From the NCBI RefSeq assembly GCF_963921235.1, contig NC_086101.1, positions 191,022,001 to 191,086,000 on the forward strand: a DNA stretch of 64,000 bases. The letters are read 5' to 3'. A program made the position numbers and the translations under genes. Positions within the stretch are counted from its first letter, which is position 1. Each line of letters begins with the position of its first letter. The notes under the pieces are model-generated. The model was not told the origin of the DNA and searched no databases. It worked only from the letters and a program-made list of their open reading frames with translations. The stretch is from Mobula hypostoma. Taxonomy: Eukaryota. This document shows positions 13,316 through 47,290 of the stretch, in pieces.

Positions 13316-14052
13316 AAAAAAACTCTTGTATAGGCACATAGATAATACAAAAATGGACAGCCAAGTGAGAGGGAACTGTTAGATTGATCTTGGAATCATG
13401 AGTCAAAGGGCCTATGCTGTGCTGTACTTTCTATGTTTTATGTTCTATGTGTGCACATGCTTGCAAATGCAAGCATTGTGTGTGTAAGCAGTTATCTCTG
13501 TAATTCACTGCAATTAAATGTGTCTGAATTTGTGAACTTGGTGGTCTGTGTGGGGCATGTATACTTTGGCAATAATATATTCTTCTGTCTTCACTACTGC
13601 AGTTGTGTGCACACCTATGTCTACCCACAGGTTTTTTCTCAATCCTTCCTCTCACACCCCATCAGCTCTCATACTCCTTCTTAAAGCCCTTCCACCCTCT
13701 GCCCCTCTTCCCTCACCTCCCCCTCTCTTTGCTACGCTACACCCCTGCCCCGCGTGAAATAAATGTGTCCAAATTTCTGTCCCTGGGTATTTATGAAGAT
13801 GTTTATCAGAGGAGAATACACGCTCATTCACTGTGGATGCTGGTATGGAGAATCAGTATTGCAGAGTAGCTCTTTTACAGGATGGAATTTGTACGTCAGA
13901 CCAGCCACCACCAACGTTCCCTTTATACAGCTGTGTGGATCAACCATTGCTCTGAGCAGGAAGTCTCTTCCTTGCCTCAAAACTGCATATTTTTGTAATA
14001 TGTATACTATGTATATTTAGAATGAAAATTGAAAAATCAAATACCTTTTAAT

Positions 14053-14062
14053 TTTATTTATT
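14053..14062 (-). terminator. putative polyadenylation signal of the Ig-receptor gene
   Basis: Overlapping AATAAATAAA on the minus strand followed by a GT/T-rich stretch. It lies at the end of an AT-rich, repeat-free segment about 530 nt after the stop codon. Confidence 0.45.
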
Positions 14063-14585
14063 AATTGAAGAGTAGTACAACAAAGAAAATATTTCATATT
14101 TCATAAACTTTTAAATTTAGACAATATCGACATTCAAAAGGCTGATAGTTTATTAACAATGTGATACAGACTTCCATTCTGTGTTTATTGTTACAATTTG
14201 TAACAGTATTGTAACTTGAAACACTGACAATGTAAATATGTTTCAAAGTAAAGGTTGTGGTACATTTATTATTTAGAAAATTTATGGATTATATTTACTA
14301 ACAAAATTAATTACACATTTATATTAACATAGATTTCAAAATTATATTAACATTAACATCATGAAAAAGAAAAATTCAGCAGTGTGGCAACAAAGGCTAC
14401 ACATACGAGAGCACCTAAGTCACGGTGCAGCCACACACCCATGCAGCTTGGAGGGAACAGCAGACCCCATACAACAAATGATTGCTGCTCAGATCAGCAT
14501 AAGCACTCAGTTGCAGAGAAGTTGGGGCAGGAGAAGTTCCTGTGTGTGAAGGGAGAAAAATGGGTTCTCGGTCTCCAACAGTGGA

Positions 14586-14601
14586 TTAGTCTGGATCATC
14601 T
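14586..14601 (-). CDS. Siglec-15-like receptor, exon 5 (cytoplasmic tail and stop)
   Basis: Acceptor TTTTATCCACAG|A GAT GAT CCA GAC TAA. Phase 2 matches the TM exon end (AG|), giving R-D-D-P-D-stop. Unique UTR-like sequence follows. Confidence 0.55.
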
Positions 14602-14909
14602 CTGTGGATAAAATAAGACCAATTAAAATCAGTTTCAGTTATTGTATGAGGAAGATACATTTCCCATTTATTGACATTTTAGAAATATTCCTGCACTCCG
14701 CCATCGGATTTCTGAATCCATGAACAGTGACGCACTGTCTACTCTCTTTTTGGACTACCTATTTATTTACTTTTCATATATTTCTTATTGTAACTTTTTG
14801 TATTTTTAATGTATTGCACGGTACTGCTGCCACAAAACAATAAATTTCACATGTCAGTGATAAACCAGATTTCCACTCCGATTCACAGAATTACAGAACA
14901 GTTCCAGTA

Positions 14910-15740
14910 TAGTCATAGTCATAGTCATACTTTATTGATCCCGGGGGAAATTGGTTTTCGTTACAGTTGCACCATAAATAATTAAATGGTAATAAAACCA
15001 TAAATAATTAAATAGTAAAATGTAAATTAAGCCAGGAAATAAGTCCAGGACCAGCCTATTGGCTCAGGGTGTCTGACCCTCCAAGGGAGGAGTTGTAAAG
15101 TTTGATGGCCACAGGCAGGAATGACTTCCTATGACGCTCAGTGTTGCATCTCGGTGGAATGAGTCTCTGGCTGAATGTAGTCCTGTGCCCAACCAGTACA
15201 TTATGTAGTGGATGGGAGACATTGTCCAAGATGGCATGCAACTTGGACAGCATTCTCTTTTCAGACACCACCATCAGAGAGTCGAGTTCCATCCCCACAA
15301 CATCACTGGCCTTACGAATGAGTTTGTTGATTCTGTTGGTGTCTGCTACCCTCAGCCTGCTGCCCCAGCACACAACATTTAACATTATCGCACTGGCCAC
15401 CACAGACTCGTAGAACATCCTCAGCATCGTCCGGCAGATGATAAAGGACATCAGTCTCTTCAGGAAATAGAGACGGCTCTGACCCTTCTTGTAGACAGCC
15501 TCAGTGTTCTTTGCCCAGTCCAGCTTATTGTCAATTCGTATCCCCAAGTATTTGTAATCCTCCACCATGTCCACACTGACCCCCTGGATGGAAACAGGGG
15601 TCACCGGTGCCTTAGCTCTCCTCAGGTCTACCGCCAACTCCTTAATCTTTTTCACATTAAGCTGCAGATAATTCTGCTCACACTACGTGACAAAGTTTCT
15701 TACCGTAGCCCTGTACTCAGCCTCACCTCCCTTGCTGATG
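14910..15740 (-). mobile_element. Rex1 LINE (young family), 5'-truncated
   Basis: ORF 15056-15655 and a (CTATGA)n tail. Confidence 0.9.
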
Positions 15741-15829
15741 ATAGAAGGATGCTTTAAGCACTTTATAGTTTGTCCACCCTGTCTCCCCTCACACATTCTC
15801 TATTTCCAACGCAGGGACGTTTCTTATTG

Positions 15830-16530
15830 AATGTGGGCCAGTATATCACAGAAACCAGCCTTCCCTCCATGGATTCTGCCTACACTTCCCACTGCCTCAT
15901 GAAAACATCCAACATAATCAGAGACCAGTCCCATCACACCTATTCTCCTTCCTCTCCCCTTCTTTCAGTCCAAAAGAGTCAAAAGCCTGAAAGCACATGC
16001 CAGTATCTCAGGGACAGCTTCTGCCCCACTGTTGTCAGACTCTTGAACTGACCTCCTCTATGACCATCTTATGAGCTCTCAATCCAGCACATCATGGTCC
16101 TGTCACTGTATCCGTCCACCTGCACTGTGCTTTCTCTGTAACTGTGACACAATGTTCTACACTCTTATATTTAATAGTTCTACCTCAATGTACTTGTGTG
16201 TGGAGAGAGCTCTCTGGATAGCACACAAGCATTTCACTGTATCTTGGTACACTTGACAATAATGTATCTATTACTCACTTTCAAGGATGCTACAACTCCT
16301 GCCCTCGGTATTATGTACAAACATACTTACTTATTCATTATTGTTATTTCATTACTTATTATTGCATTTGCAGAGTTTGTCTTCTTTTGCACATTGGCTG
16401 TTTGTAGTTTTTCATTGACTCCATTGTATTTGCTTATTCTATTGTGAATATCTATTGTAATTCTATTGAGTTTTGCAGCTACTGTGAATGCCCACAAGAA
16501 AATGAATCTCTGTGTAGCATAAGGCAATAT
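15830..16530 (+). mobile_element. Rex1/Babar-type LINE 3' remnants
   Basis: LPSMDSAYTSHC..KTSNIIRDQSH...DSFCPTVVRLLN and family 3' UTR pieces. Confidence 0.6.
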
Positions 16531-16532
16531 AT

Positions 16533-16895
16533 TTGTTTGTTTGTTCAGTATGTGCCATCTTGTATGACATGGGCAATCTTAGTCTTTCCGTGACCGTGAT
16601 TGTCCTTGGCAAATTTTTCTATGGAACTGGTCTTCCATTGCCTTCTTCTGGGCAGTGTCTTTACAAGATGGGTGACCCAGCCATTTTCAATACTCTGCCT
16701 GGCATCAGTGATCACATAACCAGGACTGGTGATATGCACCAGCTGCTCATACGACCATCCACCACCTGCTCCCATAGTCTCACATGACCCTGAATGGGGG
16801 CTAAGCAGGTGCTACACCCTGCCCAAAGGTGACCTGCAGGCTAACAGAGGGCAGGAGCACCTTACACCTCCTTTGGTAGAGATGTATCTCCACCC
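16533..16895 (-). mobile_element. RTE-tailed SINE-like element (Bov-A/Sauria-SINE-like 3' end)
   Basis: GAAGGCAATGG...AAATTTGCCAAGGACAATC...(AAAC)n on the minus strand. Second copy at 49075-49450 and a plus-strand partial copy at 36280-36365. Confidence 0.55.
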
Positions 16896-17159
16896 AGCTA
16901 CTCAGAAAGTAACATATACATACTTCGGTAATAAATGTACTTTGAACTTTGGGTCCACCAGTGCCCTTGACCTTTATGGGTTTGAGTGATGCTGCCAAAG
17001 GCATAGGTTGTCTGTCAGTCTTTGTGTGCAGTATTTCATTGAATATGTTGTATTTCTATGTTCTGCTGTGAATGCTTGCAGGAAAATTAATTCAGAATAG
17101 TATATAGTGACATTAACGTACTTTGATAACAAATGCCTTTGAACTTCATTACTAATAAC

Positions 17160-17370
17160 GGAGACACCAGAGGGTCTGCAGATGCTGGAAATCTTGAGCA
17201 ACACTCACACAATACTGGAAGAACTCAACAGGTCAGGCAGCATCAAAAGAGGGAAATGAACTGTCTCAGGCTGAGACCCTTCATCTGGACTGGCAAGGAA
17301 GGGGGCGGAAGCCAGAATGAAAATGCAGAGAAGTGGAAGGAACGCAAGCTAGCAGGTAATAGATTAGCTC
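17160..17370 (-). mobile_element. Penelope-associated terminal repeat
   Basis: Reverse complement contains CCAGTCCAGATGAAGGGTCTCAGCC...GATGCTGCCTGACCTG...CCAGCATCTGCAG. Confidence 0.6.
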
Positions 17371-17384
17371 AATTAGAGTCATAG

Positions 17385-17900
17385 AAAAGAACAGCACAGA
17401 AACATGCTCTTTGCCCACCTAGTCAGTGCTGCAGTGCTGAACGATTTAAACTGTCCAGTCCCATCGAACTGCAGCAGAACCATAGCCCCCCATATCACTA
17501 CCACCTACCTATGTACCTATCCAAACTTCTCTTAAAAGTTGAAATCAAACTCATAGGCAGCACTTGTGCAAGCAACTCATACCACACCCTCACAATCCTC
17601 TGAGTGAAGAAGCCTCCCCTCATGTTCATCTTAAATTTTTTGCCTTTCTCCCTTAATGCTTGGCCTCCAGTTGTTGTCCCACCCAACATCAGTGGAAAAA
17701 GCCTGCTTGCATCTACCCTATCTATACCCTCGTAATTTTGTACATCTCTATCAAATCTCCTCTCATTTTCCTGTGTTCCAAGGAATAAAGTCCTAACCTA
17801 GTCAATCTTTCCATATAGCTCATCTCTTTAGCCAGAGATAACCTGAGGCAACATCCTTGTAAATTTTCTCTGTACTCTTTCAGCCTTATTTACCATAAGA
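17385..17900 (-). mobile_element. CR1 LINE 3' end
   Basis: Minus ORF ...KFKMNMRGGFFTQRIVRVWYEL...FKRSLDRY. Confidence 0.8.
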
Positions 17901-17904
17901 CTAA

Positions 17905-19118
17905 AAGATATGGGAACAGAATTAGGCCATTTTGCCCATTGGGTCTGTTTTGCCATTTCATCATGGCTGATCCAATTTTCCTCTCAGCCCAGCCCCAGTC
18001 TCTTGTCTTCCTCCGTATCTCATAATTCCCTGATCAATCAAAAATCTATCAATCTCTCCCTTAAAGATACATAAAGACTTGGCCTCCAGAGAATACCACA
18101 GATTCGCCACTTTCAGATTTGCCAGAAATTCCTCCTCATCTCCGTACTAAAAGGACTCCCCTCTATTGTGAGCACGTGGCCAAGTGGTTAAGGCATTGGA
18201 CTAGGGATCTGAAGGTCGTGAGTTCGAGCCCCAGCCGATGCAACATGTGTTGTGTCCTTGAGCAAGGCACTTAATCACACATTGCTCTGCGACGACACTG
18301 GTGCCAAGCTGTATGGGTCCTAATGCCCTTCCCTTGGACAACATTGGTGTCGTAGAGAGGGGAGACTTGCAGCATGGGCAACTGCTGGTCTTCCATACAA
18401 CCTTGCCCAGGCCTGCGCCCTGGAGAGTGAAGGCTTTCCAGGCGCAGATCCATGGTCTCACAAGACTAACGGATGCCTTTACTTTACTATTGTGAGGCTA
18501 TGTCTTCTGGTCTTAGACTCTCCAACATTCGGAAACAACCTCTCCACATCCACTCTATCAAGGCCTTTCACCATTCAATAGGTTTCAATTAGGTCACTGC
18601 TCACTCTTCTGAATTCCAGTGAATAAAGGCCCAGAGCCATCAAACATTCTTCATATGACAAGCCATTCAATCCTGCAATCATTTTTGTGAACCTCCTTTG
18701 AATCCTCTACAGTTTCAGCACATCATTTCTAAGAGAAGGAGCCCAAAACTGCTCACAATACTCCATGGGGCCTCACCAGTGCTTTATAAAGTTTCAACAT
18801 TGCATCCTTGCTTTTATATTCTAGTCCTCTTGAAATGGATGCTAACATTGCATTTGCCTTCCTCACCACAGACTCAACCTGAAAATTAACCTTGAGAGAA
18901 TCCTGCACAAGGACTCTTCCCTTTGCACCTCAGTTTTCTGTATTTTCTCTCCATTTAGAAAACAGTCAACCCATGACCATACACTTCCTGACACTGTATT
19001 CCATTTGCCATTTCTTTGCCCATTCTCCTAATCTGTCTAAGTCCTTCTGTAGCCTCTCTACTTCCTCAAATTGACCTACCTCTCCACCTACCTTCATATC
19101 ATCTGCAAACTTTGCAAC
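17905..19118 (-). mobile_element. CR1 LINE (host of the SINE and LTR insertions; continues at 24034-24210)
   Basis: VAKFADDMKVGG...LQKDLDRLGEWAKKWQMEY. The sequence continues seamlessly on the far side of the LTR element (GVRQGSVLEPILFTLYIND). Confidence 0.85.
18173..18486 (+). mobile_element. tRNA-derived SINE with RTE-like (TTTAC)n tail
   Basis: Pol III A box TGGCCAAGTGG, B box GTTCGAGCC, central TGTGTCCTTGAGCAAGGCACTTAA, and a 10-bp TSD CTATTGTGAG (18163-18172 and 18487-18496). Near-identical copy at 34780-35090. Confidence 0.9.
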
Positions 19119-19965
19119 TGTGATAAAATACCAAATTATCAGAAGATTGATGCCGATAAGAGAGTTATGAGAGAGACAAATGGGAGAAACATTCAAAATG
19201 CTAATCAGAGAGAGACGAGAGAGATTACCGAAAAGAGACACAGTTCCAAGTATTGTTTAGACTGGTTGCTTTGAACCTGAACTGTTTGAAGTTTGATGGA
19301 CAGGCGATACTCCAGCAGGAGGATAAAAGGAACAGGTTCGCTAAGGCAAGGAACACACACCATGACACCACGAGATAACGAGACCCTGGAAGAGCGGTGT
19401 GCCCCCACAAGTTGGTGAGAGTTTTGGAGGTCTGGTCACGGGACCAACCATAGACGCACAGGGTGAGAAGGTACGATCGGCGGGAACCTGGTGTGTGTGT
19501 CCGCCCTCGCCTGGGGGCCGGGTTCACCGTAGAAGAACGATTGTATCCGGAACGGAGGGGTCACAGTCGGTGACCTCAGAAGACATTACAAAGGGCTCGC
19601 CCAAAAGCTAACTGCGAGGAATATCAAAGGTCTGTTGAATCCGATTTGAATATCATCATTCGCTCTCTCTCTCTCTCCCCCAAACGGCACAACAACGATT
19701 ACTGCGAACTGAACTGAACTGAACTCTGTGTCACTTGAGTCTGATCATTTTACCCTAGATTGGGATAGAGCTTGATTGATCCTATAATCCTAGTTCTGTG
19801 TACATGTGTGTTTTATCATTGCTAACCCGTTGCATTTATATCCTTACGTTTAGAGTACTGTGTTACTTATTTCTTTAATAAAACTTTCTTAGTTCCAGTA
19901 ATCCAGACTCCAACTAAGTGGTCCATTTCTGCTGGTTTGGCAACCCAGTTACGGGGTACGTAACA
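19119..19965 (+). repeat. 5' LTR
   Basis: TGTGATAAAATACC...GGGGTACGTAACA, a direct repeat of 23186-24033. Confidence 0.95.
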
Positions 19966-19969
19966 TAAG

Positions 19970-19987
19970 TGGGGGCTCGTCCGGGAT
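19970..19987 (+). other. primer-binding site complementary to tRNA-Pro
   Basis: TGGGGGCTCGTCCGGGAT, 4 nt after the 5' LTR. It is the same 18-mer as the well-known tRNA-Pro PBS. Confidence 0.9.
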
Positions 19988-20063
19988 TTTGAACGCTAAA
20001 TTTGGGACTGGGTAAATTGATTGGGTTAAAATTCCCGACAGAAAGAAAAGGCAAACAGCAGAA

Positions 20064-21200
20064 ATGGAGATTGAGGAATTTCTAAAGGCGCCAACCTTGG
20101 AGGCATTAGAGGATGCCAGGAAAGTAGAATTGGCAGCTGTGGCCAAACGGTTGAATCTTTTTAAGGGGAAGTCGACCATGAGGAGAGAAGAGATGCACAG
20201 AGCTATCATAGAACATTATGTGTCTAAAGGTGTGTTTCCCCAAGGGGAGCTGGAGGTGATATCTATTGAAAAACCTGGTGGAGACGCAGTACAGGTGCAG
20301 CTTGAAAAATTGAGACTCGAGCATGAGTTCTGGGTAAGACAGCTAGAACACGAAGAGAAACAGTTAGAACAACAACGAGAAGAGAGGCAGTTGGAGCGAG
20401 AAGAGAAACAGAGGGAAAGGGAATTTGAGCTGGAGAGGTTAAAGATAAGGGCCGAGCAGGGGCTCGTGCCGAACCAAGGTGGAGGGTTCAGGGTGACCCA
20501 GGAGGTTAGGCTGGTTCCCCCATTTGACGAGACCGATGTTGATCGGTACTTTCTCCATTTTGAAAAAGTTGCTGCAAGTCAGGACTGGCCAAGGGATAAG
20601 TGGGCTGTTTTGCTTCAGAGTGTACTTAAAGGAAAAGTCCAACAAGCTTACTCGGCTTTGTCCGCAGAAGATGCCCAGAAGTATGAGGTGGTGAAAGAGG
20701 CCATACTCAGGATTTATGAGTTGGTCCCGGAGGCAAACCGGCAGAGGTTCTGGAATGCGAGGAAGCAGTGGGACCGCACGTATTTAGAGTTTGCCCATGA
20801 GATGCAGATATATTGTGAGCGTTGGTGCGCCTCGAAGGGGGTAAATGGGGATTATGACAGACTGCTACAGCTGATCCTGATTGAGCAGTTTAAAGGTTGT
20901 GTCCCTGAAGGTATGAGACCCTACCTCGATGAGAAAGAGGCAGACACTTTAGCCGCAACTGCTAAGTTAGCGGATGAATACGCGTTGACACATAAAACGA
21001 AGTTTACCCGGAGTAAAGGCTACCAGAAGGGTAGTCAAGACGGCGGGGAGAGTCCGCCAGAAAAGTCATAAAGTAAGCTGGGGACTAGTGAGAAGGATAA
21101 GGTAGACCGGGAGCAGTTTGGTAGGAAGTCTCCTGGGGTTGTATGCTATAATTGTGGGAAAGTCGGACACTTTGCGTCCAGGTGCTTTGCCCCAAAGAAG
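20064..21200 (+). pseudogene. gag: Gypsy gag (coiled coil, SCAN-like domain, CCHC knuckle) with premature stop
   Basis: 335-aa ORF (FEKVAASQDWPRDKWAVLLQSVLKGK...YEVVKEAILRIYELVPEA.RQRF). After the TAA at about 21069 the frame continues to CYNCGKVGHFASRC. Confidence 0.85.
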
Positions 21201-21339
21201 GAGACAGGAAAAGGGAAAACAGCGGTTCTGACTGGCTGTATTGAGCTGGTAAGCAAACCGCTAGGAGAGAAGAGGTCTGATAAAGTTCAGGAAGGGCGCG
21301 AGAGGTTTATCTCGGCCGGATTGGTGTCGGTGAAGGAGG

Positions 21340-23010
21340 GGTTAAACCCAGTTCCAGGACGGATCTGGAGCTTGTCAGTCATTGATATTAAAGAGTGTGT
21401 TAGACTTTAGTTCAGAGACCCAAACTGGGAAAGTCAGGGTCATAAAAGGCGTTGGGAAAGGGACTGAGGCAGTACCTTTGCACCAGATACACCTAAAAAG
21501 TGACTTGGTCTCCGGACCGGTCACGATCGGGGTGAGGCCCGAACTACCGATGAAAGATGTGGAGGTCTTACTCGGTAATGACCTCGCCGGCGGAAATGTA
21601 GTAAAACTGACAAGCTAGCCTGCCAGCATTGAGGCCTCGCCCATGGACTCACAGGTTTATCCCATTTGCGCAGTGACTCAACGTGTGTCCAGAAAGGCTG
21701 CCGAAGTAATTGTAGAATTGGCTGAGACGTTTCTACCAGCCTTGTACCAGGGGGAGGTAGAAAGTGAAAAGAAGGAGCATAGTAGAACAGGAGGAAGTGT
21801 GGGAGCTGAGGCAGACTTAACATTAGCCACGAAGGAATTTGTACAGGCACAGGAGCGAGACGAGGAGCTGATGGTTTCGGCGGACACAGCTCTCTCTGAC
21901 GCAGAATTAAAAAGGGAGCCAGTAGGCTATTGTGTGGAGGAGGGAGTGCTAAGGAAGAAATGGAGACCAAGTACCGTGTCCACAGATGAGGAATGGGGGG
22001 TGGTGCCAAAAATTTATGGGGATGAGATTCTTAACCTGGCCCACAAGATACCCCTCGGTGGACATTTTGGGGGGAGGAAAACAGTCGGCGGAATCATGAA
22101 AGAGTTTTACTGGCTGCACAGGAGGAAGGATGATATTGACTATTGTAGACGTGAGTTAACACAGTTAGAGGCTATTAACATGTTAAAAGCTCACCATGAT
22201 CAGAAAACAGATCTAGCTGGTGATATCATGAAAATTAATGAGGCTAGGGTGCCACCTGATAAAGGGAGGACCCATTTTGAAAAGATAAGTGTGGTGCTGA
22301 CCAGATGGGAGAACTCTATTGTGTTGACCAACTTTGCTGATGAGTTCTCTCACTTAATCCCTAAACAAAGCGACCCGTTACAAGAGCTAATTAAACGGCA
22401 CGCACACATATGTCCGAATGTCCCGAAGTGATGCAAAGAGCTGGGACATGGTGTTGCTGTCACATCAGGTCAGCCTAGTGAGCAACATCCCTATAGAATG
22501 ATTAATTCAGTGACAAAAGGGCTAAAGAACACAGAAGTGTAGATTGGGGATGTAGTGGTCTGGAGTGACACGTGGGAGGAGCACATTGTGGCAGTAGAGG
22601 AGTTGTTTAAACGGCTGTCCGAAGCCAACCAGACAGTGAACCTCGCAAAAAGTGAATTCGGCCACGCAAAAATCACTTATCTGGGATTTGTGGTAAGACA
22701 GGGGCAGCTGGCACCGATGCAAGTTAAGGTGAAGACTATCTCTGACGTCCCAACCCCGACAGACAAGAGAGCCCTGAGAAGGTTCTTGGAGATGGTGGGG
22801 TACTATAGGAAGTTTTGCAAGAACTTTGCGGATATTACCCACCCTCTTACTAAGCTCTTGCCAAAGAATGCTATATTGGTATGGGACGACCCTTGTTATC
22901 TTGGTCTGGGACGAAAACCACTGAGAAGTTACACTCATCACAACTCATTAGTGTTTTTGGCCACTATGAAGTTTGCTAAGTTGGAGCCTGGTCTTAGAGG
23001 ATTATCAAAA
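21340..23010 (+). pseudogene. pol: Gypsy pol remnants: protease, integrase zinc finger, RT palm/thumb
   Basis: VEVLLGNDLAGG (protease C-terminus; DTG motif frameshifted), ILNLAHKIPLGGHFGGRKT...FYW (integrase H2C2), then *IGDVVVWSDTWEEH...VNLAKSEFG...YLGFVV...LRRFLEMVGYYRKF (RT with YIDD destroyed). Integrase core and RNase H are missing. Confidence 0.8.
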
Positions 23011-23185
23011 TAACACATATAAAAGGAACGGCAAATGTGATTGCTAACTGTCTGTCAAGGTGTTGTCAACTTAAAATTCTCTGCATTAGCCAAATAGCTG
23101 ATGAACATGTATATTTGTGTGTATCTAATAGTGTATTCATGCCTATAATTTTTACCCCAGTAAAAATCCTTGAAGGATAGAGGTA

Positions 23186-25430: not shown

Positions 25431-25439
25431 TGGGCTGTA

Positions 25440-25950: not shown

Positions 25951-25997
25951 TCACAATTCAGGCATTTAAAGGCAAATCTCCCAGCATCTTTACATAC

Positions 25998-26097
25998 CTG
26001 GGTTTGATCTTGTATAAAATGATGCCCATCACTAACAAGGTGAAAATTTTCATTCCGAGTGGGATACACAACAGCACAACGGGGGACATCTGCTTGA
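25998..26097 (-). CDS. Siglec-15-like receptor, exon 4 (transmembrane segment with central Lys)
   Basis: Acceptor CTTTCTCTTCAG and donor AG|GTATGT, phase 1 to 2. Encodes (V)KQMSPVVLLCIPLGMKIFTLLVMGIILYKIKP. Confidence 0.85.
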
Positions 26098-28008: not shown

Positions 28009-28383
28009 CAGCTCTCATCCGCAGGTGGGCCTCATACAGGGACAGATGGATGATCAAGGACGAAGTATATCCATGGTCAGTCCTGGTCTTCAACTCAGCC
28101 AGACACAGGTAGCTGTGACTGTCCTCCACACTCAGCTGCTTTATCCTGGTCGAGGCGTCCCCCAGCTCTGGGTCCCCGATGAGCTCGTACCGAGTCACCC
28201 CGTTTTCCGCTGCCCACGATCCATTTGTTTGGCGCCTGAAGGTGACGATGTGTCGGTAAGGAGTCTTCCTCATCCACGTCACCGTGAGTGAGATAAAGCT
28301 CTGCGGAGGCCGTGTGAACTCACAGGGTAACGTGGCCGAAGCTCCCTCGGTTCCAGTCACCTCCAGATCTTTCCCATCAGAAG
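28009..28383 (-). CDS. Siglec-15-like receptor, exon 3 (second V-set Ig domain)
   Basis: Acceptor GTCCTCCTCTCAG, donor G|GTGAGA, 375 nt, phase 1-1. Motifs ATLPCEF...VTW...RYELIGDPELGDAS.RI..L..EDSHSYLC match V-set B, C, D, E and F strands. Confidence 0.92.
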
Positions 28384-28984: not shown

Positions 28985-31790
28985 TGCTGTCTTCTGGTTG
29001 TTCTTTCCATCTCCAGAATACGAACCCAGTCCCTTCACAGCTGTCGCCAAGTGGTACGGTCAGCAGCAACGTCCTCCAGGTCCTCGGGTCTGATCTTGCA
29101 CTTTCTTAAAGCAGTCTTCATCTGATCCTTACAGCGCTTCTTCGGCCCTCCAGCTGAGCATCGACCATGATGTAGCTGGCCGTATAACACTCTGCGGGGT
29201 AGCTGACATGGGGGCATCCTTATCACGTGCCCAAGCCACTGCAGCTGACACTGGGTGATCATGGCCTCAATACTCCTGCAGTTGGTCTTTACAAGTATTT
29301 CAGTGTGAGGTACCCGCTCATGCCAGGTAATTCCGAGGATGCGCTGGAGGCAGCTTATGTGGAAGTGCTCCAAGGACTTGATGTGACGGCGGTAGGTTAC
29401 CCAAGCTTCACAGCTATAAAGGAGGGTGGTGACACAGACCGCTTGGTATACGGCGACCTTTGAGGAGGGACGAAGGCTCCTGTTCTGAAAGACCCTACGC
29501 CAAAGTCTCCCAAAGGCAGCTGATGCCTGCTTAATGCAGCTCTGGATGCCGTTGTCAATGCTGCTATCCTCAGACAGAATGCTCCCCAGATATTTGAAAA
29601 ATGGCACTACTGACAGCTTTTCATCACCAACAGTGAAGGCAGGTAGAGTGGGTGGGACACTGGTACTCCATTGGCAAACCACTTCTGTCTTGGTGGTATT
29701 GACAGTGAGCCCCATCCTGCTGTACGCTCTCACCGCCACGGCAAGGACAGTCTGAAGATCCTCCGGAGTATGGGCCACAGAGCACAGTTGTCTGCATACT
29801 GCAGCTCCAGGACCCGCTCTCTACGGAGTTTGGTGGCTGTGTGGAGCCTCCTGATGACAAAGAGGTTGCCATCTAATCTGACGTCCACTGCCACCCTGCT
29901 GCTGTCTTCAATCTCATTGTGGAGAAGCTTGGTAACACACAAGAGGAAGATGTTAAGGAGCACAGGCACTGGTACACACCCCTGCCTCACCCCTGTGCGT
30001 ACAAGGAAGGGCTCGGACTCTTGTCCTCCTGTGGTCACCCGAGCAGTCATCCCATCATGGAACTGGTGGAGGAAGTTAACAAATTTATTGGGACAGCCAA
30101 ACCTGAGGAGGACATCCCATAAGAGCTCTCTTTGCACAGTGTTGAATGCTTTGGAGAGGTTGACAAAGGCCATAAGCAGGTCCTGATGTTGCTCCTGGCA
30201 CTTTTCCTGAAGCTGCTGGGCTGTAAAGATCATGTCGATCGTGCTCCTGTTCTTCCTAAATCCACACTGTGATTCAGGCAGCATTGACTCGGTGATTTTG
30301 CTAATCAGTCTCTGAAGCATCACCTTAGCCAGGACCTTTCCAGCAACAGAAAGCAGTGATATGCCCCTACTATTGCCGCAGATGGCCTTGTCACCCTTGT
30401 TCTTATAAATGACAACAATGTTTGAATTTCTCCATTGCTGTGGGATGTTCTCATCAGCCCAGGCCTTGGTGATGTACTGGTAGAGGGTGCGCATACACGT
30501 GTACCCTCCGTTCTTCAGTAACTCAGCAGGGATATTGTCAGTGCCAGGGGACTTGTTGTTCTTAAGGGAATGGACAACTGATAGAACCTCCTGGAAGGCT
30601 GGTGGTAAACTGAGGTAATGAATAGGAGGAAGTTCAGGCAGTTCGTCCAGGATGGTGGGGTCTGCGTCAGAGTCCTGATTAAGCAGGGTGTTAAAATGCT
30701 CAGCCCACCTCAGCAGAATGGTATTCTGATTCTTCAGAAGTGTTAGACCATCTGCTATTTTCAGGGGAGTAACAAATCAATTTATTCGGCCGTAGATGGT
30801 TTTGACAGCATTGTAAAAATTATGCATGCCATTATTATCAGCAAATGACTGGATTTCATGTGCCTTTTCAGTCCACCACTCATTTTGTATGGCCCGTATT
30901 GCCTTTTGCACTTTCCTCCGAGCTGCCTGCCGATGCTACCTGATGCTGGTGGATGACGGGTCGTCTAGTTGCCCGGTGTGCTTTGCATGTCCTTAAGCAA
31001 GTTGTGGATGGTGTCTGAGTTATCATCAAACCAGTCTTGGTGGTTCCTGCTGTTATGGCCGATGGATTGGGCTGCTGACACATGGAGCGCAGAGCTGATA
31101 TAGGTCCACTGTTGTTCCATGGTATTTTCTGAGCTCAGATAAGGTTCCAGCTCTCTTAGTTTCTCAGCTAGGATGTGTTGAAACTCACTTCTTGCTTCTG
31201 TGTTTCTCAGGCAGTTGCAATTTGGCTGCTTTTTATTGGGTTTTTGCAGCCGCAAGGGGGGACACACTTTCATATGGAGCTTGGCCACAATCATACAGTG
31301 GTCAGTCCAGCAGCCTGCACCTCTCATGGCACGGGTGATGAGAACATCCTTGATGTCACTACGTCTCACAATGAAGTCGATCATGTGCCAATGTTTAGAG
31401 TGAGGGTCCATCCACGAGGTCTTATATTCTGCCTTCTGCTGGAAGATGGTGTTGGTTATGGTAAGGTTATGCTCAGAGCAAAGAGTAAGCAGTCTCATGC
31501 CATCTGCATTCACCTTGCCAATACCATGCCTACCGAGCACTCCACTCCATATCCTGTTGAAGTTCCCAAGCAAAAGGATCTTATCATTCTTAGGGATCCG
31601 GCAAAGAGCTTCATCCAATGTTGATTAAAGCATTTCTTGGCCTCATTCTCAGAAGGCAAAGTTGGTGCATAGGCACTGAGAAGCATGGCATGGCGTTTCT
31701 TTGCCAGGGGGATACGGAGGGTCATTAATCTTTCAGTAATGCCAACAGGTGTTTCTGTGAGACTTGGTAGAGAGGTGTTCGTGATGGCCA
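28985..31790 (-). mobile_element. RTE-clade LINE (APE endonuclease + RT), frameshifted
   Basis: Minus ORFs SAYAPTLPS...DKILLLGNFN...WMDPHSKHWHMIDF, then GNSRGISLLSVAGKVLAK...ESQCGFRKNRSTIDMIF...GVRQGC...LQYADNCAL, then FKYLGSILS...QLQWLGHVIRM. Confidence 0.9.
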
Positions 31791-31861: not shown

Positions 31862-31862
<1 letters not shown>

Positions 31863-34770: not shown

Positions 34771-34779
34771 AGTTTGTGA

Positions 34780-37210: not shown

Positions 37211-37519
37211 AGTAATAAACCAAAGTTAGAGTTAGTAAACTGTGGGCATGTTGCTTTGGTAGCGGAAGCATAGTCACACTTGCGGGCTGCCTCCAGAACG
37301 TGCTCGGACTGCGTCGGTCGTTGCCGCAAGCAATGCATTTCACTGTATGTTTCGATGCACGTGTGACAAATAAGGCTAATCTTTCATTTTTTAAGTTTAA
37401 ATCTTTAAGAGAGGCATGGTAGCAAAGCAGTTACAATGATCAATAATGAAAATCCCCTGCCCAATCACCGGTTGAACATTAATGGAAGTGGAAAACAGAT
37501 TTGAGACCGGGTTCAGATT

Positions 37520-37990: not shown

Positions 37991-38379
37991 CCTCGATAGA
38001 ATTGAATTGAATTGATTTTATTTCTTACAACCTTCACATACATGAGGAGTAAAAATCTTTACATTATGTCTCTGTCTAAATATGCAATGTGGAACCATAG
38101 TAATTTATAATACTTCATAATAATTAAAACAGTTAATGTAATATAGAAATACACTCAAATCAGTGTGAGTTAATCAGTGTGGTGGCCTGGTGGAAGAAGC
38201 TGTCCTGGAGCCTGTTGTTCCTGGCTTTTATGCTGCAGTACCGTTTCCCAGATGGTAGCACCTGGACCGGACCATGGTTGGGGTGACTCAGGTCCCCAAT
38301 TATCCTTTGGGCCCTTTTTTCACACCAGTCTTTGTAAATGTCCTGAATCATGGGAAGTTCACAACTACAGATGAGCTGG

Positions 38380-39450: not shown

Positions 39451-39769
39451 TGAGCCAATTGACATTAAAAGCCACCCTGTAGCTCTGAGCCTTTGTGGGG
39501 TGTGAGGCACAAGCTGCTCGGTGAGCAGTCTCCAGAACATTCGTGCCAGTTCCCGTTGTAGACTGAACTTCGATATTTCATCACTTCTGCAGCCAATGTT
39601 GACATTGCTTTCACAAGAACTTAGGAAATGAGAAGTCAAGGCAATTCATCTCCTTAAGCCCTGTCTGCCATTCATCGAGACCACGCCCAATCCTTTATCT
39701 CAATACCATCTCCCTTGCCTCTCAATGCTCTTAATGTCCAGAATCCTATCACTTTCTTTTTAAATGAAC

Positions 39770-40460
39770 AAAGACCATATGACCATACAACAGAGGAGCA
39801 GGATTAGGCCATTCAGCCCATCAAGTCTGCTCCACCTGCCCATTATGGCTGATTTATTATCCCTCTCCTGCCTTCTTCCCGTAACCTTTGACACCCTGAC
39901 TAATCAAGAACCTATCAACCTCTGCTTTAAATATACCAAATGACTGTCTGTGGCAATGAATTCCACAGATTGACCAACCCCCAGCTCAAGAAATACCTCC
40001 TCATCTCTGTTCTAAAGAGAAGTCCTTCTATTCTGAGGCTGTGCCCTCTAGTGCTAGCCCCCCCCATGATAGGAAACATCCTCTCCATATCCACTCAATC
40101 TAGGCCCTTCAATATTTGATAGGTTTTAATGAGATCACCATTCATTCTTTTCAACACCAGTAAGCACAGGCTCAGAGTCACCTCGTATGTTAACCTTTTC
40201 ATTCCCGGGATCATTCTCGTGAACTCCTTTGGACTCTAACACATCCTGAGGCCTAAAAATGCTCACAATACTCCAAATGTGCTCTGACCATTGCTTTGGA
40301 AAGCTTCAGCATTACAGTCTTGCTTTTATATTCTAGTCCTCTCAAAATGAATGCTAACATTGCATTTGCCTTCCTCACCACTGCAAATTTGGGAATCCTG
40401 CACTAGGGCTCTCGGGTCTCTTTGCACCTTTGGTTTCTGAATTTGCTCCCCATTTAGAAA
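39770..40460 (-). mobile_element. CR1 LINE 3' portion
   Basis: Reverse-complement CR1 3' UTR and ORF2 C-terminus. Confidence 0.75.
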
Positions 40461-40499
40461 ATAATCTACATCATGAGGAAATCTGCAGGTGCTGGAAAT

Positions 40500-41140
40500 C
40501 CGGAGTAATCGCTGAGGATCTCACCTACTCCCGACATATCGATGCCGCTATAAAGAAGGCAAGACAGTGGCTACACTTTATTAGGAGTTTGAAAAGATTT
40601 GGCATGTCAACAAATATACTCAAAAACTTCTATAGTCGTGCCGTGGAGAGCATTCTGACAGGCTGCATCACTGTCTGGTATGGAGGGGTTACTGCACAGG
40701 ACTGAAAGAAGCTGCAGAGGATTGTAAATCTAGTCAGCTCCATCTTGGGTACTAGCCAGCAAAGTACCCAGGAGATCTTCAGGGAGCGGTGTCTCAGAAA
40801 GGCAGCGTCCATTATTAAGGACCTCCAGCACCCAGGGCATGTCTTTTTCTCACTGTTACCATCAGGTAGGAGGTACAGAAGCCTGAAGGCACACACTCAG
40901 CAATTCAGGAACAGCTTCTTCCCTCTGCCATCTGGTTCCTAAATGGACATTGAACCTGTGAACACTACCTCACTTTTTAAATATATATGTGCATTTAATC
41001 TATTAAATATATGCATCCTGTCATTCATTCATTCATTTATTTATTTATTATTTCTACTTCTATATTATGTATTGCATTGAACTGCTGCTGCTAAATTAAC
41101 AAATTTCACGACACATGCCGGTGATAATAAACCTGATTCT
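40500..41140 (+). mobile_element. Rex1/Babar-type LINE 3' portion
   Basis: HIDAAIKKARQWLHFIRSLKRFGMS...FYSRAVESILTGCITVWYG and KAASIIKD..HPGH..FSLLPSGRRYRSL, with a (GATTCT)n tail. Confidence 0.85.
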
Positions 41141-41149
41141 GATTCTGAC

Positions 41150-41292
41150 AAAATGCTGGAGGAATTCAGCAGGTCAGACAGCATCTGTGGAAAAGAGTAA
41201 AGAGTGCTGATGAAGGGTCTTGGCCCGAAACTTTGACTGTTTACTTATCTGCATGGATGCTGCCTGGTCTGCTGAGTTGCTCCAGAATTTTG
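41150..41292. mobile_element. Penelope-derived inverted-repeat unit with central hammerhead core
   Basis: Arms of about 50 bp (41150-41201 and 41240-41292) are reverse complements. They flank CTGATGAAGGGTCTTGGCCCGAAAC. Confidence 0.7.
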
Positions 41293-41792
41293 CATGTGTT
41301 ACACCTTTATTCCTTCTGCCAAAGTGGATGACCATACACTTCCCTGCACTGTAGGAGGCAAAGCGAGGACGTTGGAGATTTTAGCAGCCTTGCCTCTGTC
41401 CTGGCCGTGAGTGCTTTAACTCAACAGAGCAATTCTTTAGGCTGCGTTTACTAGTACCCGCCCCTGAGCGAGAAACAAAATAACAAAACGGTTTCCAGAG
41501 CAGGCAGAATCCCCTCTGGTGTTCTGAAACTCGGCGACGAGAAACCTCAGTTACAGACCTGCAAACTCCCACATCCAGAAAGAGGAGAATATTCCAAGGG
41601 TTAGAGTTTGCTTGGAATACGGCAGCAATCAAGATCTACATCGATGATTCGGCTGAGGGGATGAAATATCAGCCTGGGGTCAGGTGCAATATACTACAGA
41701 AAAGTGTGAGGGAACCCACAGGGCTGAACAAAACAGAAATTTAGAGCATTTGTTAAATAGTGGAAGATCAAGTTCAAAGTTCAAAGTAAGTG

Positions 41793-42112
41793 CGAGGGGT
41801 GATTGATAAGTTCGTGTCCTAAGGTAGAAGGAGTCCATTTTAGAAAACCTAGCACATTTGTTTTCAACATAGTCCCCTCCTGCATTCACACACTTAGTCC
41901 AGCGCTCGTGGAGCATACGGATCTTGGACCTCCTGAAAGTGTCCACAGCAGGGATGATTGATAAGTTTGTGGCCTAAGGTAGAAGGAAATAAGATATTAA
42001 CTTCAAACTTTCTGCATAATCACTCAAAGAGTTGAACTGCATGTGCACGTAACGAGAGCTGTATAACTCATCGCCTTCTACCTTAGGCCACGAACTTATC
42101 AATCACCCCTTG
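41793..42112. mobile_element. Mariner-derived MITE (320 bp)
   Basis: TIRs CGAGGGGTGATTGATAAGTTCGTG.CCTAAGGTAGAAGG and its reverse complement, TA target at the right end, and an internal minus-strand transposase C-terminus (IRMLHERWTKCVNAGGDYVE). Confidence 0.85.
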
Positions 42113-42114
42113 TA

Positions 42115-43380
42115 TTTATGGGCTCTCAAGTGGCTTATGAGTCCAATCTTGGCTTTGAAAGTTCTTCCGCATTCAGGACAGGTGGCTCCAGATGGCAGAT
42201 CGGACTTTGGTTGTTGCTGCTTCTCTCTCCATTTTCTTCTCTTTTCTTCTAATTCTGCACATCTGTTGGCTTCGAAAGTTGCTGTTCCTCCTCCGATGAT
42301 GCCTTGCCAGAGTTTCCTGTCCTTGGCACTGGTTTCCCAATTGTTGATGTTGATGTTACATTTCTTCATGTTGGATTTTAAGACGTCTTTGAATCTCTTC
42401 TGTTGTCCGCCTCTTTTACGTTTGCCTTCTTTAAGCTGGGAGTAGAAGATTTGTTTCAGCAGATGTTCGTTTTTCATCTGAACGTTTTTGATCGCTCCAT
42501 CTTAGTTGGTTTTTGATGATGTAGGCTTCAACGCTTGTTGTTTTTGCTTTATTTAGCATGCTGACATTGGTTCTTCTATCCTCCCAGCTGATACTGAAGA
42601 TGTTTCGAAGACAATGTTGATGGAACTTTTCAAGTGCCTTCAGATGTCATCGGTATGTTGTCCAGGTTTCTGATGCATACAGGAGAGTTGGGATCACCAC
42701 TGCTTTGTACATTAACATTTTGGTGTCTGTTCAGATGGCACGATCATGAAAGACTCTTGTTTGGAGACATCCAAAAGCTGTTCCAGCGCATTGTTGGATC
42801 TCATTGTTAACATCAGGTAGGAGATACAGAAGCCTGAAGGCACAGTCTCAGCGATTCAGGAACAGCTTCTTCCCCTCTGCCATCTGATTCCTAAATGGAC
42901 ATTGAACCTTGGAAGACGATGTTGGGTCTCGTCATTAAGGTCGACATTGGAGGAGAGGTGACTTCCAAGATACGGAAAGTGGTCCACGTTTTCCAGGGTT
43001 GTTTCGCCAAGTTGAATTGATGGTTCTATCCGATTTGTCTCAGTTGGTGACGGTTGATAGATGATCTGAGTCTTCTTGGAATTGATGGTAAGTCCAAGTT
43101 TCGTGTATGCACGGTTCAAGGCAGTCAGAATCTGTTGTAGGTGGTTTTCTGAAAGAGCTGCAACACTGTTGTCATCTGCGTATTGGAACTCGATGAGGGA
43201 ACTCGTGGATGTCTTGTTTCTGGATTTGAGACGGGCAAGATTGAAAAGTCTGCCATCTGTTCTGTAGACAATTCCGATTCCTGGGAGTAGGTCATCCCTG
43301 ATTACGTGGATGATTGTCACAATGAAGATGGTGAACAAAGTTGGGGCAAAACAAAGTTGCTTTCTTTGGCTGTATATATG
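42115..43380 (-). mobile_element. RTE-clade LINE 3' portion
   Basis: DGRLFNLARLKS...FQYADD..VAALSE...HFPYLGSHLS; KQIFYSQLKEGKRKRGGQQKRFKD...CPECGRTFKAKIGLISHLRAH. A Rex1/Babar piece lies at about 42805-42910. Confidence 0.85.
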
Positions 43381-43831
43381 TGTGCGGTTGAATGACAATA
43401 AACTTCAGCTTGAACAATGACTATTGTGTAGTTAGTGACACACAAAGGCTGGCAAATGACAATGTACGAAGACAATGTGTACAAATATAGAAGTTATATA
43501 TTGATAAATAATACTAAGAACATGAGTTGTAGAGTCCTTAAATGTGATTTCACTGGTTATGGAATTAATTCAGGGTTGAGGTGAGCGAAGTTAACCACAC
43601 TGGGTCAAGAGCCTAATGGTTGAGGGATAATAACTGTTCCTGAACCTGGAGGAGTGGGACCTAAGGCTCCTGTACCTCTTTCCCTTATTAGCCTCAAATC
43701 CTGAGCCTCTTGTACCTCTGCAACTAGATCCTTGACTTTGTCATCGGGAGACCACTGTCAGTGCAGGTCAAAGATAACATCTCCACCTCCCTGACAATAA
43801 ACACAAATGAACCTCAAAGATGCCTGCTGGG

Positions 43832-44548
43832 CGATGTTTCCTCTAATTTGTAATAACCAGTGTGCGCAATTTTTTGCCCAATGACAACAACATGCGCACA
43901 CTGAATAATTTCTTCAATAAAAACAGCATAAATAAGTCAGTTCTAAAATCTGCAGACAAATCATCTCAAACTCCATGTCGTCAATGCCGTCCGCATCAGA
44001 AACCGGAAAAGGAACTGTGATTGTGTATGATAGTGAAATAAGCTTAACTTAAGTTTAATAAGCGAGGTTGAAGGTGACAATGTTTAATGTTGAAAGAGTT
44101 GGACAGAGTAGATGTGGAAAGGCTGTTTCCCTTGGTGGGTGAGTCCAGGACAAGAGGCCATAGTCTTAGAATTAGAGGGTACCCAGTTAAAACAGAGATG
44201 AGGAGAAATTTTTTTAGCCAGAGGGTCGTGGATTTGTGGAATTCATTGCCACATACAGCTGTGGAGGCTCGATCACTGAGGGTGTTTAAGGAGGAGATTG
44301 ATAGGTATCTAATTAGTCAGGGTATCAAGGGATATGGGGAAAAAGCCGGAAATTGGAACTAGATGGGAGAATTAGTTAGCTCATGGGGGAGTTGCGGAGC
44401 AGAGTTGATGGGCCGAATGGCCTACTTCTGCTCCTTTGTCTTGTGATCTTGTGATCTTATGACAACCTCTAGTGCGTAGTTTAAATTCCTTTGCGCACTA
44501 GTAGCAAAAGAATGTGTGTGCGTGTGTGTGACCTTAGAGAGAACATTG
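43832..44548. mobile_element. hAT-like non-autonomous element with a CR1 insertion
   Basis: 15-bp imperfect TIRs CGATGTTTCCTCTAA and TTAGAGAGAACATTG. No clear 8-bp TSD. Confidence 0.5.
44075..44460 (+). mobile_element. CR1 LINE 3' end (young)
   Basis: ORF 44087-44362, a (CTTGTGAT)n tail, and a possible TGACAA target duplication. Confidence 0.85.
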
Positions 44549-45739
44549 GTGGCTAGTCCATTGCTCTAATTTCCTGGCACTCATGACTTGTAGTAGCATC
44601 GCAGTTAGTGCAAGGTTTTACAGTGTGGTTATCGCGGTTAGCGGAAAGCTTTACAGTGCGTCAGCTGTAGGATCGGGGTTCAATTCCTGCCACTGTCTGG
44701 AAGGAGTTTGTACCTTCTCCCTGCGTCTGTGTGGGTTTCCTCTGTGTGCTCTGGTTTCCTCCCACAGTCCAAAGACATACAGTATACAGTGGGGTTAGGG
44801 TTAGTGAGCTGTGGCCACATTACGTTGGCACTGCAAGTACAGAGACACTTGCAGGCTGACCTCAGCGCATCCTCGGACTGCGTTGGTCATTAACGCAAAC
44901 GACACATCTCACTGTATGTTTCACAAAAACACAGAAAACCTACAGCACAGTACAGGCCCTTCAGCCCACGATGCTGTGCTGAACATGTACTTTAGAAATT
45001 ACCTGGGGTTTACCCATGGGTAATTTCGATGTACATGTGACAGATAAAGCCTATTTGTGTTGCTGAACTGCGGTGATCAGAGTTGTGTCAGTCGGTTCAA
45101 CAACTGAATGGTCGAGGAGAAGTAATTGTTACTGATCCAGTGGTGTGGGACTTCAGAATTTTTGTTTTTTAATGTTTTATTTATTTATTGAGACACAGCG
45201 CTGAACAAGCCTGTCCACTGCCGCTCAGCAATCCCTGATTTAACCCTAATTTAACCTTAATCAGAGGACAATTTACAATGATCAATTAACCTGCCAACTG
45301 GCAGATCTTTGCACTGTGGGAGGAAACGGGAGCACCTGGAGGAAACCCACACAGTCACAGGGAGAACGTACAGGCAGTGGCAGGAGTTGAACCCGGGTCA
45401 CTGGTACGGTAAAGTGTCGTGCTAACCACTATGTTACCGTGCCGCCGAGCTGTGAGAAGATGAAAATAGCCTGTATGGTGGGGATCTCTGCCTCCCGTCG
45501 ATACAACCAATGGTGGGGAGGGGTGTACCGGTGATGTTTTCGGCAGAATCTACTGCTCTCTGCAGCTTCGCACATTCCTATAACTTTCCAAAGGAGCCAC
45601 AGATAAACACCTGAAAGAATATCTGCCAGAAGGTGGCATTGCCTGGATGATGGGGATCTTTGTTGATGGACATTGTCTCCCTGAGGCAGCTCCTCCTGTA
45701 GATACCACATCTGGGGTGTTGGTCATAGGTTCTTCAAGT

Positions 45740-46890
45740 AGGCCTGTTCTGCGCTGTGTACTCAGCCCCCTGCTGTACTCACTGTACACCCATGATTGTG
45801 TAGCCAAGTTTCCATCAAACTCAATATATAAGTTTGCTGATGACACAACAATTGTGGCCATATCTCGGGTAATGATGAGTTTGAGTACAGAGAGGAAATT
45901 AAGAACCTGGTGGCATGGTGCGAAGACAATAACCTATCCCTCAACGTCAGGAAGATGAAGGAATTGGTTGTTGACTTCAGAAGGAGTAGTGGACCGCACG
46001 ACCCTATTTACATCAGTGGTGCGCAAGTGGAACAGGTCAAAAGCTTTAAGTTCCTCGGGGTCAATATCACAAATGACCTGACTTGGTCCAACCAAGCAGA
46101 GTTCACTGCCAAGAGGGCCCACCAGCGCCTTTACTTCCTGGGAAAACTAAAGAAATTTGGCCCGTCCCCTAAAACCCTCACTAATTTTTATAGATGCACC
46201 ATAGAAAGCATTCTTCCAGGGTGCATCACAGCCTGGTATGGAGTTGTCCTGTCCAAGACCGGAAAAAGCTGCAGAAGATCGTGAACACGGCGCAGCACAT
46301 CACACAAACCAATCTTCCGTCCGTGGACTCACTTTACACCGCACGCTGTTGGAGCAGTGCTGCCAGGATAATCAAGGACATGACCCACCCAGCCAACACA
46401 CTTTTCATCCCTCTCCCCTCCGGGAGAAGGCTCAGGAGCTTGAAGACTCGTACGGCCAGATTTGGGAACAGCTTCTTTCCAACTGTGATAAGACTGCTGA
46501 ACGGATCCTGACCCGGATCTGGGCCGTACCCTAGATAGGTATCTTATGGATAGGGGAATTAAGGGTTATGGGGACAAGGCGGAACCTGGTATTGATAGCA
46601 GATGATCAGCCATGATCTCAGAATGGCGGTGCAGGCTCGAAGGTCCGAATGGTCTACTTCTGCACCTATTGTCTATTGTCTATTGTCTATTGTCTAATAT
46701 CCGGACCTGCCTCTCGGTTTTTTTGCACTAACTTTACTTTCCATTTTTCTATTTTTTATTTATGATTTATAATTTAAATTTTTAATATTTACTATCGATT
46801 TGTAATCCAGGGAGCGGGAAGCGCAGAATCAAATATCGCTATGATGATTGTACATTCCAGTATCAACTGTTTGGTGACAATAAGGTATAA
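45740..46890 (+). mobile_element. Rex1/Babar-type LINE RT C-terminal portion
   Basis: LSPLLYSLYTHDCVAKFPSNSIYKFADDTTIV...KELVVDFRR...FKFLGVNITNDLTW. A CR1 3' fragment with a (CTATTGT)n tail is inserted at about 46532-46695. Confidence 0.88.
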
Positions 46891-47087
46891 AGTATAAAGT
46901 AAGGTCAACCCAGCTATCAGCTTCAACTATCCCGACCAGTATTCACTGTGCTGCCACTGGACAAAAGGCTGCCACAACCTGCTCCGATAGCTCCGCCTCT
47001 CAGTTTCCCAGATGCTGACCCTGCCCGTGGAGGTGAAGTGAAAACTTACACAGCTAAGTCAGTCTGAGCAAAATAAAAAGCACTTAC

Positions 47088-47148
47088 TGTCACTGAGTAC
47101 AGAGCCCAACAGCAGGGCAGCAGGCAGCCAGGAACCCAGTAAGCTCAT
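47088..47148 (-). CDS. Siglec-15-like receptor, exon 1 (signal peptide)
   Basis: GAG ATG start, then MSLLGSWLPAALLLGSVLSD, then donor A|GTAAGT in phase 1, matching exon 2. Lies in a repeat-free island. Confidence 0.8.
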
Positions 47149-47290
47149 CTCCAACTCTATCCTCAGTGTCCTGTTTGTCTCTGGACAATAAAATGCAGAA
47201 GTTTCGTTAAGGGTTGCTTCATTTCCTGACATATTCCTGTCCCACCCTGATCTCAACAACAAACAAGGGAAGCAACTTTCTATACATCAG
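47149..47290 (-). promoter_or_regulatory. proximal promoter/5' UTR of the Ig-receptor gene
   Basis: Minus-strand CAGGAAATGAAGC (ETS/ETS-IRF-like, 47216-47228) and AACGAAACT (IRF half-site-like, 47200-47208) just upstream of the ATG. Confidence 0.4.

Follow-up and report, generated by a model that had tools for sequence, protein, structure and literature searches.

We analysed a 64,000-nucleotide (nt) stretch of DNA from the devil ray Mobula hypostoma (Batoidea, Myliobatiformes; contig NC_086101.1, positions 191,022,001 to 191,086,000), hereafter called the window, in whose own numbering all coordinates are given. The gene in question, LOC134346383, probably encodes an intact, five-exon, activating-type receptor that belongs to an elasmobranch family of paired receptors derived from the Siglec-15 lineage. 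A first-pass annotation of the same DNA had proposed a Siglec-15-related receptor at this place.

Gene model and domain architecture

The coding sequence joins five minus-strand exons, with GT-AG junctions throughout and intron phases 1,1,1,2, into 906 nt encoding 301 amino acids (aa), just as the first-pass annotation had proposed, and the join was checked by translation. The donors are GTAAGT, GTAAGG, GTGAGA, and GTATGT, and at each acceptor AG comes after a pyrimidine tract. The assembled translation matches P0004, listed by NCBI as "uncharacterized protein LOC134346383 [Mobula hypostoma]", at every one of its 301 residues. P0004 is an independent RefSeq gene model with which the hand-built exon join of the first-pass annotation agrees; LOC134346383 is therefore a real gene, although one already computer-annotated in RefSeq, without a name, and in this respect the first-pass annotation needs correcting. 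Orthologues of 298 to 305 aa are found in Mobula birostris, Hypanus sabinus, and Hemitrygon akajei. The features of the gene, including its transmembrane (TM) exon and 3' untranslated region (UTR), are as follows:

47088 to 47148, minus strand: exon 1, ATG and signal peptide MSLLGSWLPAALLLGSVLSD; 61 nt, donor GTAAGT, phase 1; residues 1-21 of P0004
35437 to 35790, minus strand: exon 2, V1 domain, residues 21-138; 354 nt; Pfam V-set E 5e-9
28009 to 28383, minus strand: exon 3, V2 domain and stalk, residues 139-263; 375 nt; Pfam V-set E 1e-12
25998 to 26097, minus strand: exon 4, TM segment with Lys280, LLCIPLGMKIFTLLVMGIILY; 100 nt, phase 1 in, phase 2 out
14586 to 14601, minus strand: exon 5, coding part, which finishes Arg297 and adds DDPD and TAA; 16 nt
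14507 to 14601, minus strand: exon 5, alternative frame when exon 4 is skipped, 31-aa tail EMIQTNPLLETENPFF...; maps M. birostris isoform X2
14035 to 14585, minus strand: putative 3' UTR, with AATAAA signals at 14062-14053

The two AATAAA signals at 14062-14053 overlap, and position 14035, about 20 nt past them, is a plausible poly(A) site and transcript end. Thus, of the span from 14035 to 47150 that had been claimed for the gene, the downstream limit is plausible, but the ATG is at 47148 and not at 47150. The TM exon was not singled out by a hydrophobicity scan of the window alone; it was recovered by a splice-aware scan and then confirmed by tblastn, and a tblastn search with 29 family proteins also hit it. 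The RDDPD C-terminus also ends the Hypanus orthologue P0007.

Both V exons lie above the Pfam V-set cut-off. V1 has the cysteines Cys45-Cys122 and an extra pair, Cys72/Cys82; V2 has Cys159-Cys232 and one N-glycosylation sequon (N192), and its best Protein Data Bank (PDB) match by phmmer is the Siglec-15 V domain (7e-10). An AlphaFold2 model built from a 51-sequence family alignment (mean predicted local distance difference test score, pLDDT, 82) consists of two beta-sandwiches and a helix at residues 269-294. Its best PDB matches in Foldseek, at 14-19% sequence identity, are JAML, pIgR, CD226, a single-chain Fv, and VCBP3, all of them tandem V-V. A tblastn search of the window with C2 domains and with tails carrying an immunoreceptor tyrosine-based inhibitory motif (ITIM) returned noise only, with no C2-like exon and no ITIM-tail exon. 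Given the V-set assignment of both exons, the V-V structural matches, and the lack of a C2 or ITIM exon in the window, the V-V-TM description holds, and with it the tandem V-V ectodomain expected by the first-pass annotation. The second domain is a V-set, and the C2-set second domain of Siglec-15 was not encountered. The cytoplasmic tail has about 8 residues (KIKPRDDPD) and no signalling motif. LOC134346383 would be a type I membrane receptor, composed of signal peptide, V1, V2, a TM helix with a central lysine, and a short tail.

Descent from the Siglec-15 lineage

A profile built from 65 V1 domains of the family matched human Siglec-15 (7ZOZ) at 93.5 bits (E 9e-26). JAML, CD33, and multi-domain pIgR scored at most 54 bits with this profile, and the next single-domain families after Siglec-15 came near E 1e-12. 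The alignment to Siglec-15 spans the whole domain, with W-x-M, VLPC-x-FTHP, C-x(8-10)-C, GRF-x-x-GN, and Y-x-CRVE in common. The C95-C104 cysteine pair is described as a unique feature of Siglec-15 (PMC10264397), and Cys72/Cys82 in V1 of LOC134346383 is its counterpart. In an exhaustive HMMER search, the V1 profile gave single-domain matches of 74-95 bits to named Siglec-15 from mammal, birds, turtle, frog, lungfish, sturgeon, and carp. These bony Siglec-15 sequences were reached only in this way and not by word-indexed search, which with the family alignment reached elasmobranchs and one bird HHLA2 only, and with V1 of LOC134346383 added only close orthologues. Moreover, the TM lysine motif (I/A)(P/A)LG-x-K-x-L-x-LLV stands in one register in the family, in a chondrichthyan Siglec-15-like gene, and in bony Siglec-15, and Lys280 aligns with the Siglec-15 TM lysine from mammal to chimaera. 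With the V2 profile, too, no single-stretch match scores above Siglec-15 (58 bits), although the separation is less distinct than with V1. By these comparisons, LOC134346383 descends from the Siglec-15 lineage. The Siglec-15-related reading in the first-pass annotation is thus upheld at the level of descent, with V1 and the TM exon of Siglec-15 type. V1 would be the counterpart of the Siglec-15 V domain and the TM exon that of the Siglec-15 TM, with the C2 exon absent.

The first-pass annotation had left room for an affinity to CD300, TREM, or NKp30, and it could be argued more widely that the gene belongs to another V-set family (CD300/pIgR-like, TREM, NKp30, JAML/CAR, or TIM) and that its likeness to Siglec-15 is that of any V-set. 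JAML is the top Foldseek match, phmmer with the diverged V1 of LOC134346383 itself puts JAML at the top (1e-6), with Siglec-15 no better than 2e-3, and the summed V2 profile scores of pIgR and CD276 are as high as that of Siglec-15. However, the scores of pIgR, CD276, and JAML add up several domains, and as a single stretch pIgR has 21 bits with the V2 profile against the 58 of Siglec-15; the Foldseek matches, at their low identity, reflect the V-V arrangement. The family V1 profile sets Siglec-15 about 40 bits above all others, and the extra disulfide and the TM lysine motif are not features of those families. For neither domain do the 60 best PDB matches include CD300, TREM, or NKp30. pIgR, with its CD300-like V fold, does turn up among the PDB matches, but its best single-stretch score is far below that of Siglec-15. 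We therefore give an origin in another V-set family very little credence and retain descent from the Siglec-15 lineage.

Sharks, rays, and Callorhinchus have a separate, conserved gene of about 400 aa, with the arrangement V1-V2-C2-TM(Lys)-KIKD (hereafter the V-V-C2 gene). The F-strand motif of its C2 domain, YxCxAxN (e.g., GTYSCVAEN), resembles that of bony Siglec-15 (e.g., GRYTCTAAN), and in each species checked it shares a chromosome record with the V-V family. In a joint tree, the family V2 is sister to V2 of the V-V-C2 gene (95-99), the family V1 is a clade of its own (100) apart from V1 of the V-V-C2 gene, and the chondrichthyan Siglec-15-like V1, the bony Siglec-15 V domain, and the V2 group meet at a three-way fork. 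LOC134346383 might still be taken for the one-to-one ray SIGLEC15 orthologue with its C2 replaced by a V domain, as its V1 and TM are of Siglec-15 type. We consider this highly improbable, since a distinct gene keeps the C2 domain in sharks, rays, and Callorhinchus, since LOC134346383 is one of at least six family members on one M. hypostoma chromosome record, and since the V1 clade of the family is separate. On the sequence comparisons, the V-V-C2 gene fits the role of Siglec-15 orthologue better, and LOC134346383 is best placed as a member of a paralogue family and not as that orthologue, which amends the first-pass annotation.

V2 of LOC134346383 would then be the second V domain that the V-V-C2 gene also has. 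In the order of events that we infer from an unrooted tree, the Siglec-15 V domain would have duplicated before the chimaera/elasmobranch split, the V-V-C2 gene would be the Siglec-15 orthologue, and the V-V family would have budded from it, lost the C2 domain, and gained ITIM-tailed partners.

The V-V-C2 proteins P0064, P0066, P0074, P0075, P0077, P0080, P0083, P0084, and P0102 are mostly named Siglec-15 by NCBI. After the F-strand Cys, this gene usually has His, not Arg, in V2 and Leu in V1, which suggests that the likely Siglec-15 orthologue of chondrichthyans may in most species be without the canonical arginine for sialic acid. A lungfish protein, P0099 (Protopterus annectens Siglec-15 isoform X2), has two V1-type V domains in tandem (residues 23-144 and 151-272), so that the Siglec-15 lineage has duplicated V domains outside cartilaginous fishes as well.

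A paired-receptor family and its arginine-less branch

The searches retrieved over 80 proteins from elasmobranchs and, beyond these, no close relative. Typical features are VLPCTFTHP, the extra cysteine pair, and Y-x-CRVE in V1 and SATLPC, TVTWMRK, and YLCL(A/V) in V2, where Leu follows the F-strand Cys in every member and Arg in none. The family has two C-terminal types. In one, the TM segment has a Lys at its centre (LCIPLGLKTLALLVMG) and the tail is about 10 residues long; in the other, a plain TM segment leads into a tail of about 100 residues, in which CTYASI motifs recur and a VIYAAV ITIM stands at the end. Within one species, the ectodomains of Lys-type and ITIM-type members are 73-93% identical (86-93% in seven of the nine pairs compared), and the two types interleave in domain trees. 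Such near-identity and interleaving mark the family, as far as sequence can tell, as one of paired activating and inhibitory receptors, in which LOC134346383, with Lys280 and a short tail devoid of motifs, would rank as an activating-type member. In the inhibitory members (e.g., P0047 and P0037), two to four D-S-C-T-Y-A-(S/E)-I repeats precede the VIYAAV ITIM, and their number differs among paralogues.

A second family member begins in the window. Exon 1 of the paralogue LOC134346382 (P0019) was found at 1399-1461 on the minus strand, with ATG, signal peptide MRSLWVCLCTVLLSVSVQGY, donor GTAAGT, and phase 1, the same 61-nt phase-1 design as exon 1 of LOC134346383. It lies 13 kb downstream of the last exon of LOC134346383 on the same strand, and the two genes are therefore arranged head to tail. 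With this paralogous exon and the elasmobranch relatives, membership in a lineage-specific family, which the first-pass annotation had only raised as a possibility, is well founded.

The TM lysine of Siglec-15 is needed for its association with DAP10/DAP12 (PMC7226832). By analogy with Siglec-15 and with other receptors that have a central TM lysine, Lys280 would recruit an adaptor of the DAP12/DAP10 type bearing an ITAM (immunoreceptor tyrosine-based activation motif), and engagement of a ligand by the V1-V2 ectodomain, relayed through this adaptor, would activate the cell. The literature searched on DAP12 in cartilaginous fish gave nothing on this family.

Arg143 (R143) on the F strand of Siglec-15 forms a salt bridge to the sialic acid carboxylate (PMC10264397). 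In LOC134346383, its position is taken by Asn123 (after C122) in V1 and Leu233 (after C232) in V2, and V1 has lost the FTHP motif; most paralogues retain the Arg in V1 (CRV), LOC134346381 being an example. In the V1 tree, LOC134346383 falls in a six-row Arg-less clade (support 100/97) with rows from M. hypostoma (Asn), M. birostris (Tyr), Hypanus and Hemitrygon (His), and Pristis and Leucoraja (Asn). Every full-length protein in it is of the Lys type. Since the clade spans Mobula to Leucoraja, its distribution dates the loss of Arg to before the split of skates from other rays, with the lineage kept intact since. The residue is non-Arg throughout the clade, which suggests that the ligand is probably not canonically bound sialic acid and that LOC134346383 is probably not a sialic-acid lectin in the canonical sense; a ligand of another kind would be expected from the missing Arg.

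The same changes could instead signal decay, LOC134346383 being a non-functional duplicate, known from a predicted model only, in which the lost Arg and the diverged FTHP reflect relaxed constraint. In keeping with this, close orthologues differ in what stands at the Arg position (N, Y, H, H), and the two Mobula species share only 88-90% identity in V1. On the other hand, the open reading frame (ORF) is intact with canonical splice sites, intact orthologues occur in six batoid species from skates to mantas, and the Ig-fold cysteines, the TM lysine, and the RDDPD end are conserved, as is an alternative-frame tail, described next, in sawfish. That the lineage has stayed intact since the skate split argues against a dying copy, and we judge decay improbable, preferring a maintained Arg-less branch of activating type.

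Isoform X2 of M. birostris (P0005) is spliced without the TM exon and continues into exon 5 in the other frame, and it maps to exon 5 of the window (14507-14601) at 97% identity. The same exon-4-skipped reading is possible in the window (14601-14507), where it gives the 31-residue tail and a 298-aa soluble isoform. The first 19 residues of this tail are identical at 13 of 19 positions to the C-terminus of Pristis (sawfish) P0072. As this frame is not translated in the membrane form, its conservation suggests that the secreted form, which skipping of the TM exon would yield, is a real product.

Several points nevertheless weigh against the account of an activating Siglec-15-derived receptor. 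The V-domain trees have about 125 columns per V domain, which limits placement, and the family V1, the chondrichthyan Siglec-15-like V1, and the bony Siglec-15 V domain resolve only as a three-way fork. No ITIM partner was found for the Arg-less clade of LOC134346383 itself. Some Siglecs bind ligands without the Arg, so that its absence does not prove loss of lectin activity. Finally, the evidence for expression and for both isoforms consists of gene predictions and conservation.

The introns of LOC134346383 measure 11297, 7053, 1911, and 11396 nt and hold relics of long interspersed nuclear element (LINE) reverse transcriptase, long terminal repeat (LTR) element pol/integrase, and SCAN/gag, among others. 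Intron 4 has an LTR retrotransposon relic at 20064-23013 on the plus strand, which consists of an open gag-like ORF of 335 aa, containing a SCAN-type capsid domain, and, after it, fragments of integrase zinc-binding and reverse-transcriptase sequence. In intron 2, a LINE-type element (29038-31618, minus strand) has a Pfam RVT_1 match (E 1e-22) at 29733-30494; the ORFs beside it, 29038-29778 and 30968-31618, are without Pfam match, and (CA)n runs near 28.75 kb and 31.8 kb flank the element. A 28-bit tblastn match at 47846-47920 was rejected, its translation having nothing Ig- or TM-like and lying amid transposon debris.

Comparison with known receptor systems

Siglec-15 is regarded as one of four conserved fish Siglecs (PMC7226832). 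LOC134346383 resembles it in the N-terminal V signature with the extra C'-C'' cysteine pair, in the central TM lysine in the same register, in a phase-1 gene design with one domain per exon, and in being of activating type without an ITIM. It differs from Siglec-15 in that its second domain is V-set and not C2, in Asn123 at the essential Arg143 position, in a tail of about 8 residues as opposed to about 45 in bird and mammal Siglec-15, and in being one of many paralogues, some of them ITIM-tailed.

Mammals have paired Siglecs in the CD33-related group (Siglec-5/14 and Siglec-11/16). As in the elasmobranch family, activating members (charged TM, DAP12-type) and ITIM members there have near-identical ectodomains, the copies look tandemly arrayed and fast-evolving, and loss of the Arg recurs in some members. 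The elasmobranch family differs in its apparently independent origin, from the Siglec-15 and not the CD33 lineage, in its V-V ectodomain, which contrasts with V-C2(n), and in being confined to elasmobranchs. JAML and CD226, the structural matches of the predicted ectodomain, share the two tandem V-set domains and the type I membrane topology, but their identity is low and they are without the TM lysine and the Siglec-15 signature.

Fish have lineage-specific paired Ig receptors of their own, namely NITR, LITR, and DICP, and the skate has MDIR. These are lineage-restricted multigene families with activating (charged TM) and inhibitory (ITIM) members, to which the present family is likened by concept only. 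MDIRs are by description CD300/TREM/pIgR-like, an affinity that the V1 profile result disfavours for the present family. No description of this family or of chondrichthyan Siglec-15 relatives was found in the literature searched, whose scope did not extend to subscription journals.

Taken singly, LOC134346383 is an ordinary, previously predicted gene model, and its interest lies at the level of the family. In a bolder version of our account, which we put forward tentatively and at somewhat less than even chances, sharks and rays would have built a fast-evolving paired family from Siglec-15, and the lineage of LOC134346383 would be an ancient Arg-less activating branch of rays and skates, with membrane and conserved secreted forms and a non-sialic, possibly pathogen-derived ligand. 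If the family-level picture is true, evolution hit upon the paired-receptor solution twice, the second time in cartilaginous fishes and from a different Siglec, and a Siglec-15-like gene with two V domains would already have been present there before the chimaera/elasmobranch split. The Arg-bearing and Arg-less lineages would offer a natural contrast for a shift of ligand. The elasmobranch family, with its V-V ectodomain, would then be analogous in function to the CD33-related Siglecs of mammals, and would supply comparative immunologists with a defined set of candidates for adaptor-coupled innate receptors in animals in which such receptors are poorly known.

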